A DNA stretch of 64,000 nt from Pavona decussata. Lineage: Eukaryota. This document shows, one piece after another, positions 60,977 through 64,000 of this stretch (position 1 is the stretch's first letter; each line of letters opens with the position of its first letter). The position numbers and the translations under genes were made by a program. The stretch lies in contig CDRNST010000188.1 in assembly GCA_977016875.1 (NCBI GenBank), positions 3,410,001-3,474,000 on the forward strand, written 5' to 3'. A model generated the notes under the pieces. That model did not search any database. It saw only the letters and a list, made by a program, of their open reading frames with translations, and had not been told where the DNA came from.

Positions 60977-61184
60977 AAAACATATGGATTACACTGTTGG
61001 CCTAGTATCTAAAATATATGGATTACACTGTTGGCCTAGTATCTAAAACATATGGATTACACTGTCGGCCTAGTATCTAAAACATATGGATTACACTGTC
61101 GGCCTAGTATCTAAAACATATGGATTACACTGTCGGCCTAGTATCTAAAACATATGGATGACACTGTCGGCCTAGTATCTAAAA
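60977..61184 (+). repeat. Minisatellite, 6 x 34 bp
   Basis: Unit AAAACATATGGATTACACTGT(T/C)GGCCTAGTATCT, head-to-tail with no spacers. Confidence 0.95.
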
Positions 61185-61927
61185 GTCGGGCAATTGGTAA
61201 TTCTGAGGGGGCAAGAGAGCTCCAACCTGCCCACCCTTGTATCCGGCAACTGATCACAGCGCAGTATTTGCTTTATCTTGTTAGCTCGCAGAGCCGGCAA
61301 CCAAAAGTTGGGTTCAAAATTGTCAGCTAATTAGCACAAAGTGTGTTTGTGTGGATAGATCACTTAACTGTTTTTCTAGCCTTTACGAAACAAGACTTGG
61401 ACAAACGTAGTGTACATCTTTATAAAAATGTTTTACCAGAAATGATAAACCTTGTCCCCAGGGTCTCATCGGTATCCAAAATGGCGAAAAAGAGCCCAAA
61501 CCGCCCTCTTGACTACAGAAATACCCCTTCCATGAAAAAAGAACCCAAACCGCCATCTTGACTGCAGAGATACCCCTACCCTAGCACCATGAAAACGAGT
61601 GGAATTTAATACACACAGGGTAAGTAGCTGGCAAAGTAGCTGCAAAACTCACTTACGCCTGTTCAGTTTCGCGATGTTTTTATTGAACTTACGATAATAC
61701 ATGTTTATAAGCCTGGAAAAGCCCAATACAGGACTTGATCTTCACCTCTGGATAAATTCATTGGGAGACGTTGACAGTTACATTAATGAACTGGCAAAAA
61801 AAGTTTAATTCAGTAACAATCATACTCTCAAAACGCCTTCCCTAGCTTCACTCTGAAATCCCTTGGTCTAGATAAAAGCAGTGAGGAAATTAATTTTATG
61901 AAAAACACGACACTCCTGAGTTTTATA

Positions 61928-61967
61928 ACAGACATGTTTTGGCAGTTGCCTCTGCCATCTTCAGTGT
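61928..61967 (-). ncRNA. Second hammerhead copy with GAAA->AAAA (G12A) core mutation, predicted inactive
   Basis: Minus strand reads aca-CTGAAGA-T-GGCAG-aggcaa-CTGCC-AAAA-CATG-TC-tgt; the substitution is at 61940. Confidence 0.65.
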
Positions 61968-62080
61968 GAAATGAACTTGTAACAAAAAAATTACAATAAT
62001 AATATGGTCTTAATTATTTCTATTATTATTGTAATTTTTTTAGCTGTATATTTCACTGTAATTTGTTACAAGTTCATTTC

Positions 62081-62120
62081 ACGCTGAAGATGGCAGAGGC
62101 AACTGCCGAAACATGTCTGT
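62081..62120 (+). ncRNA. Minimal type I hammerhead ribozyme motif, intact core
   Basis: acg-CTGAAGA-T-GGCAG-aggcaa-CTGCC-GAAA-CATG-TC-tgt: canonical CUGANGA and GAAA boxes, 5-bp helix II, palindromic CATG at helix III, GUC site, 3-bp helix I. Confidence 0.8.
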
Positions 62121-62195
62121 TATAAAACTCAGGAGTGTCGTGTTTTTCATAAAATTAAATCCCCTGGTGTTGTTAAATGTTAAGGTATTTCTATA

Positions 62196-62267
62196 AAAGC
62201 ATTCTGATTTTCAAGTCTGCATTACTCCGACATGGAGTTTACATACAAACTGTCATAAAGATACTTT
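62196..62267 (-). promoter_or_regulatory. Eukaryotic SECIS element, type II, in the deiodinase 3' UTR
   Basis: Minus strand reads AAAGTAT-CTTT-ATGAC-AGTTTGTAT-GT-AAA-CTCC-ATGTC-GGAG-TA-ATGCAGACT-TGAA-AATCAGA-ATGCTTT. This gives helix I (AAAGTAT/ATGCTTT), the AUGA..GA quartet, a fully paired 9-bp helix II, unpaired AAA and a CTCC/GGAG mini-stem. It lies ~560 nt after the DIO stop codon. Confidence 0.92.
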
Positions 62268-62822
62268 GAGAAATTCCTACACGTTAATGCTTACTTAATA
62301 GGGATAACAAGTTACACTTGAGATGAAATTCTGATAGCAAAATACTGTTCACTTTTCATCCCTTCCTGTGAACCCTCCCCCCCCCCCCCACCCCACTTCT
62401 CATCTTCATCTATTCTCATTTCTGTTATCTACGCGTTATGCAAAAATTGTTTGTACGTTATAGGTCAATGTTTTGTACATATTTTTATGTGAAAGGTGTA
62501 AGGAATAAATTTGGATCCTTATATAGCCTTAAATTCTCTGGTCATTCATGATGATCCAGTTGTCAGAGCGAGGCTTTTTCAACTGAGCAAACAACCTGTA
62601 CGCTCAAAACATTTTTAACAATACATTTGGTTCCAAAGTCTCAAAAAACGTTCAGAATATAACTTGAGTGAGAAACTGAATCAGATCTACTCAGTAAACT
62701 AATGATGTTGCTACATATCTGAAATATTTAAGAGATTTAAGAACCATAAGACATGAAATTTTGAGGCGGCTTAGTTTACTTTGTGTTTCAAAGAGACGGA
62801 AGTATTATTGTTCACCGGCAAA

Positions 62823-63104
62823 TTAATAGCTAATTACAGGGAAATTGTCCTCAGTAATTATGTTCTTGAGGCGGCGGCTAACTTCAGTAAGGTTGTATCC
62901 AAATGGCCCCACTCCTCCCTGATACAAAATTCTGCCATCCATGATAATGTAGAGTCTTTCCGGTGTGGCACCGTAAGCCACATTTGCTGTGTTCCACATT
63001 GTATCAACTACCACTGGAATCTTGACTGGACAGTGAGGCTGTAGAAGCTTAGCAGCAGCGCATCGTTGCTGAATAGTACAGTGCTGGCGTATTTTGTAGT
63101 TGTT
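62823..63104 (-). CDS. DIO: Iodothyronine deiodinase (DIO family, selenoprotein), terminal coding exon; upstream exons lie beyond the right edge
   Basis: Acceptor ttttgttttag| then NNYKIRQHCTIQQRCAAAKLLQPHCPVKIPVVVDTMWNTANVAYGATPERLYIIMDGRILYQGGVGPFGYNLTEVSRRLKN..*. This matches the DIO C-terminal half (cf. DIO1 NN.DIR.H..LQDR..AA...PVVVDTM.N.....Y.A.PERLYII..GRILY.G..GP..Y). A SECIS lies downstream. Confidence 0.92.
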   Translation of the reverse strand, partial: NNYKIRQHCTIQQRCAAAKLLQPHCPVKIPVVVDTMWNTANVAYGATPERLYIIMDGRILYQGGVGPFGYNLTEVSRRLKNIITEDNFPVISY

Positions 63105-63814
63105 CTAAAACAAAACAAATGTCCCTTGCATCAGAAGTCTGTAGAAAAATACTTACTAAGTACGTGAACGATCTAGAGAGGTCCTTGGGAACATTCTTTT
63201 TTCTTTGTATACTAATAAGGATTGTGTTTGGTTATCCGCTCCCATGAGATAAATTTAGTGCACCTTTGTTTTCGCTAACTATCTCATTGAAGCATTTCTG
63301 CTTGATCTGTTTAAACGAAATCAACTTTAGGAGGTAAATTGTTTCACGCTTCATGTTTAGTGAAGGTTTTATGCATGGAAGGTTTGATCATCGTGATGAG
63401 ACAACTTTCGTGAGCATAATTAATGCAAACGATTTACAGCGTATTCACTGCAATAGTGTTGAATAAGAGAAACACAAAGGTCGACATATTGATAATTAAC
63501 TTATAAAAGCACATATCTGAACGTTGTCGTTGTCGTTTTCATGATCTCCCATGGATAAAATATAAAGGTCTTAGGACTACGTTACGTAAGCATCAATGTA
63601 TGGTCTCCAAAGAACAAGGAGACATTGACTTGAAAATATACCGCTCTCACATGATCCCACATAAACAAACAGTGAACATGAATAGACTTCATAATTAATG
63701 TATAGGGCTGTGCGGAAATCTTGCGTTTTTGACGCATCAGTACCAAGTTTAGGCTCCTAAGAGACTGAATACCCTTGGTGACTGTGGAAGCCGGTATAGA
63801 TGTTATTACATCAG

Positions 63815-63965
63815 TATATGAAGACTGCAGATGGGAAATAAAATAGAGAAGTGATGATCGCAGTTATATAAACGCATTTTCTGTAAACAGCCCCAAAATT
63901 TTCATGGCTTAAACAGGATTGAAACCATCCACTTTTGAACAAATGATCTTTGCAACGGTATTGCG
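63815..63965 (-). mobile_element. Degenerate tRNA-derived SINE fragment in the deiodinase intron
   Basis: ATATGAAGACTGCAGATG..GAAGTGATGATCGCAGTTAT..GGCTTAAACAGGATTGAAACCAT resembles a common anthozoan SINE (from memory), with an eroded B-box on the minus strand. Confidence 0.35.
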
Positions 63966-64000
63966 ATGACAGCTGCAAAGTATATTCAATAAAATGTACG

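Follow-up and report, generated by a model that had tools for sequence, protein, structure and literature searches.

The 64,000-nt stretch of Pavona decussata DNA analysed here (the window; G000:C188:3410001-3474000 in our coordinates) carries on its minus strand the last exon and the 3' untranslated region (UTR) of what is very likely a functional two-exon gene encoding a 256-residue enzyme of the deiodinase family, with a predicted N-terminal membrane anchor and a catalytic selenocysteine (Sec) at codon 123. We are highly confident that this is a genuine selenoprotein gene, and with moderate confidence we expect its product to dehalogenate a compound that resembles thyronine or tyrosine. The structure of the gene, the position of its TGA, the structure and conservation of its selenocysteine insertion sequence (SECIS) element, purifying selection downstream of the TGA and the presence of tRNA-Sec and SepSecS genes in the genome were all established directly. 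Coordinates refer to the whole window; the next 10 kb beyond its end (L004) were also read, and positions there are given as window-equivalents.

Gene structure and active site

A preliminary description of this DNA claimed a C-terminal deiodinase exon, and a search against Pfam confirmed it: exon 2 (Table 1) matched the T4_deiodinase family (PF00837) with an E value of 4.7e-25 (88.7 bits, model positions 157-233 of 237). Exon 1, located beyond the end of the window, matched the same family with 116 bits and contains one TGA. Both matches are above the cut-off of 27 bits, and the two exons jointly span model positions 14-233 of 237. Exon 1 begins with an ATG at window-equivalent position 64616, preceded six codons before by an in-frame stop, and the joined model of 256 residues is open from this Met to the stop codon except for the TGA (codon 123, window-equivalent 64250-64248), which is the sole in-frame TGA of exon 1. 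The exon junction was accepted because GT/AG sites are present, the reading frame is maintained and the same junction occurs in the public gene models of Desmophyllum and Oculina. The stretches of sequence read at the locus contain no N.

The TGA lies in the context RPLVVNFGSCS-TGA-PEFMADL, then YIEEVHPVDGWAFK, and is followed downstream by YIEEVHPVDGW. The active-site codon of the upstream exon is thus TGA and not TGY (Cys), the alternative named in the preliminary description, which had predicted a GSCT-U-P context followed by YIxEAH..DGW; what we found is NFGSCS-TGA-PEF and then YIEEVHPVDGW. The pieces of exon 1 on either side of the TGA were searched separately against the structure of mouse Dio3 (4TR3): residues 76-122 aligned to chain positions 11-56 and residues 124-161 to positions 58-95, while exon 2 aligned to positions 101-175 (E value 7.8e-16) and also to mouse Dio2 (9H48). 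The three pieces are colinear on 4TR3 and, because chain position 57 alone remains between the aligned pieces of exon 1, the TGA corresponds to Sec170 of mouse Dio3, chain position 57 being Sec170 under the numbering that places His202 in the EAH motif.

The equivalents of Dio3 Ser167, Tyr197, Glu200, His202, Trp207 and His219 are kept, among them residues of the proton relay and of the edges of loop D, whose roles have been described (PMC11592359), and Thr169 is replaced by Ser. Exon 2 holds the equivalents of His219 and Glu259; Dio3 Cys239 aligns to an Ile, and a Cys is found four residues earlier. At its N-terminus the protein has a hydrophobic stretch (residues 7-39, Kyte-Doolittle 19-residue mean of 1.7-1.8) that, judging from sequence, fits the membrane anchor of the family, and both the start Met and this hydrophobic segment are conserved in three orthologues.

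The SECIS element

A search with the Rfam SECIS models, which the preliminary description had proposed for positions 62150-62300 of the minus strand, matched SECIS_1 there at 34.2 bits, with an E value of 4.9e-4 (6 kb against 4227 Rfam families); scaled to the SECIS family alone over the 602-Mb genome, our own arithmetic gives about 0.01 expected matches. The element lies on the same strand as the gene and begins 558 nt past the stop codon, a gap earlier put at ~560 nt.

All parts of a type II architecture are present, namely a non-Watson-Crick AUGA...GA quartet (AUGA at 62256-62253, 3' UGA at 62213-62211), a helix II of 9 bp (62251-62243 with 62222-62214), an unpaired AA(A) located 11-12 nt past the quartet (AAA at 62240-62238) and an apical CUCC/GGAG mini-stem (62237-62234 with 62228-62225). 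The same architecture is given by the minimum-energy fold of 62270-62193 (-17.9 kcal/mol, z of -2.6), and one out of 200 shuffled sequences folds as well. The quartet, the 9-bp helix, the AAA and the mini-stem noticed in the preliminary description are therefore all seen in the sequence and reproduced by folding; the full pairing it described is true of helix II and of the mini-stem only, whereas helix I is weaker and consists of 3 + 4 pairs around a bulge. Because helix I is bulged, our own SECIS pattern scanner missed this element, and the scanner was kept only as a supplement for two paralogues (g9 and g11, see below).

Conservation among coral orthologues

A word search with exon 2 identified seven relatives whose loci were retrieved, four of them including exon 1. 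The motif NFGSCS-TGA-PEFMADL is kept in all four, which are Desmophyllum pertusum (L037), Oculina patagonica (L038), an ENA assembly (L040) and a Logan contig (L042), and the TGA is thus found in five of five orthologous sequences when the present gene is included. The closest named homologues are from Montipora, Orbicella, Desmophyllum and Oculina; together with RNA runs labelled 'coral metagenome', they support the coral origin proposed in the preliminary description.

Homologous SECIS elements were detected in three of the four TGA-bearing orthologues and in one orthologue known from exon 2 only. Rfam scored the element behind the L039 orthologue at 38.3 bits, above the gathering score, and those of L040 and L041 at 30 bits, and the elements of Desmophyllum and Oculina were found by BLASTN and motif. 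Their distance past the stop codon varies (~310 nt in Desmophyllum, ~260 nt in Oculina, ~480 and ~1200 nt in two ENA assemblies), and when distant orthologues are compared by BLASTN, nothing of the 3' UTR outside the SECIS aligns any more. Across the alignment of five species helix II is 100% paired, against 18-53% in controls slid by 1-3 columns; two pairs have changed on both sides (G-C to A-U and U-A to C-G) and three on one side (wobble), a covariation resting on five sequences whose statistics are modest and whose direction is clear.

Downstream of the TGA, the ratio of nonsynonymous to synonymous substitution rates (dN/dS) is 0.17-0.20 at dS of 0.6-1.0 in comparisons with Oculina, L040 and Desmophyllum (127-133 codons), which is not compatible with untranslated sequence.

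In the L040 assembly, a type I hammerhead ribozyme (L040:6264-6308, plus strand; RF00163, 38.9 bits with a gathering score of 34) lies ~470 nt past the orthologous SECIS, and it may belong to a retroelement.

Paralogues and the selenocysteine machinery

A search of the genome with PF00837 identified 13 two-exon deiodinase paralogues, this gene included, eight with a catalytic TGA and five with Cys. Five TGA forms are located within 30 kb on contig C19 (C19:899000-929100), two lie in tandem on C173 (C173:375800-383800) and one on C65, and the Cys paralogues are on C24 and C65. Among these genes there are two near-identical pairs of recent duplicates (g4/g6 and g9/g11), as well as one copy, g12 (C19:926086-929003), with additional stops and without a SECIS, which is probably a decayed pseudogene.

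A covariance model built from the five orthologous SECIS elements (R1) recovered in the window only its own training copy (87 bits) and, with filters off, no SECIS of a paralogue. Because primary sequence dominates this model it was unusable as a uniform test of Sec against Cys forms, and Rfam SECIS_1 was instead applied to equal 3' flanks, 2.2-4 kb past the stop of each paralogue. In this uniform search SECIS_1 was detected behind TGA copies only (34.2 bits for this gene, 28.0 for g6 and 25.1 for g7) and behind none of the five Cys paralogues. Focused Rfam searches added elements for g4 (29.8 bits) and g13 (25.4 bits), so that at least five TGA forms have a SECIS detectable by Rfam, and our pattern scan added candidates for g9 and g11, along with one weak GUGA match behind one Cys copy. 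The sole candidate for g7 (G000:C65:1496873-1496940, minus strand) lies 3.7 kb past the stop; either g7 has a long or interrupted 3' UTR, or this element is not part of the gene. An alignment of the paralogue SECIS candidates by MAFFT misplaced the copy of the window and was dropped, and only orthologues were aligned.

In a tree of exon 1, which is unrooted and poorly resolved, this gene groups with its orthologues in one clade (100% support). Elsewhere in the tree Sec and Cys forms are interleaved, as in the grouping of g7 (Sec) with g3 (Cys), and several exchanges between Sec and Cys are therefore likely. One residue follows the state of the active site: the position of Dio3 Glu259 is acidic (PERL/PDRL) in all eight TGA paralogues and is Ile or Met (PIRL/PMRL) in all five Cys paralogues, although this rule is not universal, given that a Cys-form shrimp homologue has PERL.

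Consistent with a genome equipped for Sec, three tRNA-Sec loci were found (75-78 bits), with the anticodon read as TCA by ARAGORN in both loci given to it, and a six-exon SepSecS gene is located on contig C143.

Features of the locus and neighbouring repeats

Table 1. Positions of the gene, its SECIS element and related deiodinase-like clusters
Feature	Position	Strand	Details and basis
Exon 1 (beyond window end)	window-equivalent 64616-64128 = G000:C188:3474128-3474616	-	163 codons; ends in GTAAAA donor
Intron, GT...AG	63105-64000, on to window-equivalent 64127	-	donor GTAAAA; acceptor TTTTAG at 63105, directly before exon 2
Exon 2, last coding exon	63104-62826	-	93 codons (93 aa); reading of the sequence and Pfam PF00837
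Stop codon TAA of the deiodinase-like gene	62825-62823	-	reading of the sequence
3' UTR, stop to SECIS	62265-62822	-	558 nt; poly-G run near 62375-62395
Type II SECIS	62264-62199	-	Rfam RF00031 (SECIS_1), 34.2 bits
Deiodinase-like clusters, tandem or inverted (G000 coordinates)	C24:1007500-1023700; C65:1500600-1506000 and 2019500-2039400		

A palindromic dispersed repeat of 301 nt (61864-62164) follows the SECIS on its downstream side, at a distance of 35 nt. The two arms of the palindrome (61885-61986 and 62062-62163) are 96% complementary, at least 40 scored copies are present in the genome, and a contig of a related coral, ~94% identical, joins the repeat flanks directly, the insertion being absent there. 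A match of this palindrome to the Rfam family 'MIR841' (88 bits, gathering score 200) was rejected as a long-hairpin artefact. Between 58000 and 64000, Rfam gave no hammerhead match at E<=10. Further downstream, at 61000-61200 on the minus strand, there is a tandem array of a ~34-nt unit (TTTTAGATACTAGGCCGACAGTGTAATCCATATG-like) in at least five copies, which reaches the edge of the stretch read.

Proposed mechanism and alternative explanations

During translation, the UGA would be recoded by means of the type II SECIS in the 3' UTR, which according to the standard eukaryotic mechanism would recruit SBP2, eEFSec and Sec-tRNA(Sec) to the ribosome. It is Sec insertion itself, the enzymatic activity and the substrate that we infer. 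The reaction would most likely be reductive and Sec-dependent, removing iodine (or bromine) from a phenolic compound derived from tyrosine, with a proton relay as in vertebrate deiodinases, in which the selenolate would attack the carbon-bound halogen and reductive elimination would follow. Vertebrate-like chemistry is expected because the residues of the proton relay and of the loop-D edges are conserved.

Several observations weigh against a functional Sec-dependent dehalogenase. The first concerns the substrate clamp, Arg275 in Dio3 and Lys241 in Dio2, a basic residue proposed to bind the carboxylate of the amino acid portion of the substrate (PMC11592359). This position is Val here (GGVGP, vs GGRGP in Dio3 and GGKGP in Dio2) and non-basic in all 13 paralogues. 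The replacement bears on the substrate and not on family membership, and because of it we assign no particular substrate, in agreement with the preliminary description. In addition, cnidarians are reported to be without a thyroid hormone receptor (PMC10083991), and a role in thyroid hormone metabolism is therefore not implied. As for the SECIS, its score falls 0.8 bit below the Rfam gathering score of 35 and its helix I is weak.

The remaining points concern transcription. Three RNA libraries labelled 'coral metagenome' yielded contigs that are ~94% identical to the locus and reveal a close relative. These contigs span the exons but also the intron and the region upstream, so that they prove no splicing and may derive from DNA or pre-mRNA; no spliced transcript was found among the RNA-library contigs matched to the locus, and the short public contigs that contain exon 2 (L041, L058-L060) are all unspliced. 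The only same-species transcript support for the SECIS is one 223-nt contig, which spans the SECIS (62171-62381; one mismatch, depth 3.7) and comes from a small library whose RNA nature is a guess. This library of 163 million letters amounts to ~0.27-fold of the 602-Mb genome, and the contig thus points to enrichment, that is, to a transcript, a reduced-representation DNA library being also possible. The contig end at 62171 was considered as a poly(A) site and rejected, given that it coincides with the edge of the dispersed repeat and the other end with the poly-G run, where assemblies break; the ends are thus uninformative in this respect. Inclusion of the SECIS in the transcript is therefore weakly supported.

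The most serious alternative, possible although rather unlikely in our judgement, is that the gene is a genuine Sec member of the family but encodes no dehalogenase, its product being a selenol oxidoreductase similar to peroxiredoxins or thioredoxins, or an enzyme acting on a non-halogenated substrate. The Val of the clamp and the reported lack of a thyroid hormone receptor would both fit such an enzyme, as would the peroxiredoxin-like nature of the deiodinase fold (PMC11592359), the placing of a coral deiodinase clone under 'oxidative stress' in an earlier study (PMC3204972) and the expansion to 13 copies, whose Sec and Cys forms alternate on the tree in a way often seen among redox families. 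On the other hand, nothing of the proton relay or of the loop-D edges (EEVHPVDGW, QH) has been lost, and these are features of deiodinases and not of peroxiredoxins; moreover, the ascidian, scallop and amphioxus members tested do deiodinate (PMC10083991). Dehalogenation stays the activity that we favour.

It is very improbable that this is a pseudogene or a truncated gene whose TGA really terminates translation and whose hairpin arose by chance or is a relic. In its favour one may cite the lack of direct RNA or protein evidence, the SECIS score slightly under the gathering score, the mobile palindrome close to the element and the state of two related copies, g12, which looks decayed, and the Desmophyllum orthologue, whose exon 1 (L037, ~4785-4950) is out of frame with that of the other corals upstream of RPLVLNFGSCS-TGA. 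This frame break is either an assembly error or the mark of a decaying copy, although the part after the UGA is under purifying selection. Against it stand the TGA kept in every orthologous sequence, the low dN/dS over 133 codons after the TGA at such divergence, a SECIS that alone in the 3' UTR is conserved and has undergone compensatory changes, and a frame that is otherwise open from Met to stop. Least probable of all is that the SECIS belongs to a different gene or to some unannotated minus-strand transcript: in favour of this one may cite g7, whose only SECIS candidate lies 3.7 kb past the stop, but four other corals have a homologous element ~260-1200 nt past the orthologous stop, again on the strand of the gene, and no other TGA-containing frame was noticed on reading between the stop and the SECIS, where no scan for open reading frames was made.

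Relation to known deiodinases and to public annotation

Vertebrate Sec deiodinases with a SECIS in the 3' UTR are textbook knowledge. The coral gene resembles vertebrate DIO1-3 (4TR3/4TR4, 9H48) in its colinear domain, in the position of Sec within FGSC(T/S)-U-P, in the conserved equivalents of the six residues listed above, in the predicted hydrophobic N-terminal anchor and in the single UGA that would be decoded through a SECIS in the predicted 3' UTR. It differs in the replacements of Dio3 Thr169 by Ser, of the clamp residue of Dio3 and Dio2 by Val and of Dio3 Cys239 by Ile, with a Cys four residues earlier, and from the vertebrate system as a whole in that its host is a coral without a thyroid and, according to the literature, without a thyroid hormone receptor, and possesses 13 paralogues instead of three.

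Among invertebrates, activity has been measured for deiodinases of Halocynthia roretzi, Chlamys farreri and oyster, and the Cys-deiodinase of amphioxus is specific for triiodothyroacetic acid (TRIAC) (PMC10083991). Compared by description, these are likewise non-vertebrate members of the same family, with Sec or Cys, and their substrates are not always thyroxine (T4) or triiodothyronine (T3); unlike the coral gene, they are all bilaterian, and we found in the literature no activity data for any cnidarian member of the family.

Jiang et al. 2012 (PMC3473315) described 11 Sec deiodinase (DI) genes in Trichoplax, only Cys-form DI genes in Nematostella and none in Amphimedon. In Trichoplax, Lottia and amphioxus the Sec DI genes make up large families in tandem clusters, and Capitella also has many of them. 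The family of this coral is similar to those early-animal families in being expanded, tandemly clustered and mixed for Sec and Cys. Unlike Nematostella, the coral studied here possesses eight TGA forms, of which at least five have a SECIS detectable by Rfam, and the possession of Cys forms only is therefore not a general property of cnidarians.

Transcripts of coral deiodinases have been reported to change in expression at settlement (PMC3204972) and in responses to the lunar cycle and temperature (PMC6851572) and to be targets of miRNAs (PMC12022774), and Sec is not addressed in these three papers. We found no paper on a coral selenoproteome in the literature, the sole cnidarian selenoproteome found being that of Nematostella (2012). 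Genes annotated as 'thyroxine 5-deiodinase-like' in Montipora foliosa, Orbicella faveolata and Desmophyllum pertusum belong to the same family and the same animal group as the present gene, and all intact named coral models among the public protein matches have Cys at the active site (FGSCTCP). For the Desmophyllum and Oculina orthologues, the public models take as their start a Met immediately past the UGA, which bears out the remark in the preliminary description that gene predictors truncate such genes at this codon. Besides, many public metagenome and Logan proteins (P0062-P0077) have a W in place of the catalytic residue, as in NFGSCSWPPFF, and are hidden Sec forms whose TGA was read as Trp under an alternative code. 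With orthologue models truncated and UGA printed as Trp, coral selenoproteomes are under-counted.

Coral deiodinase-like genes and invertebrate Sec deiodinases were both already known. What is added here is the extension of Sec-type deiodinase-like genes to Scleractinia, which involves no new mechanism and is no surprise to specialists in selenoproteins.

We also considered a broader reading, speculative and in our view doubtful, according to which stony corals would maintain a large battery of deiodinase-like enzymes, here eight Sec and five Cys forms, as part of a pre-bilaterian system of halogenated tyrosine derivatives, used either for hormone-like signalling (settlement, lunar or seasonal timing) or for the salvage of iodine or bromine. 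The conserved clade of the present gene would act in it on something other than an amino-acid iodothyronine, for instance a deaminated or decarboxylated iodophenol, because this clade is devoid of the basic residue that binds the carboxylate. If this were true, the Sec-dependent dehalogenation of signalling molecules would predate the origin of the thyroid hormone receptor. The eight Sec and five Cys paralogues, with a residue that tracks the state of the active site, constitute a natural system in which to ask why Sec is kept or replaced, and the gene described here offers a route to what a deiodinase does in an animal with neither a thyroid nor a thyroid hormone receptor.

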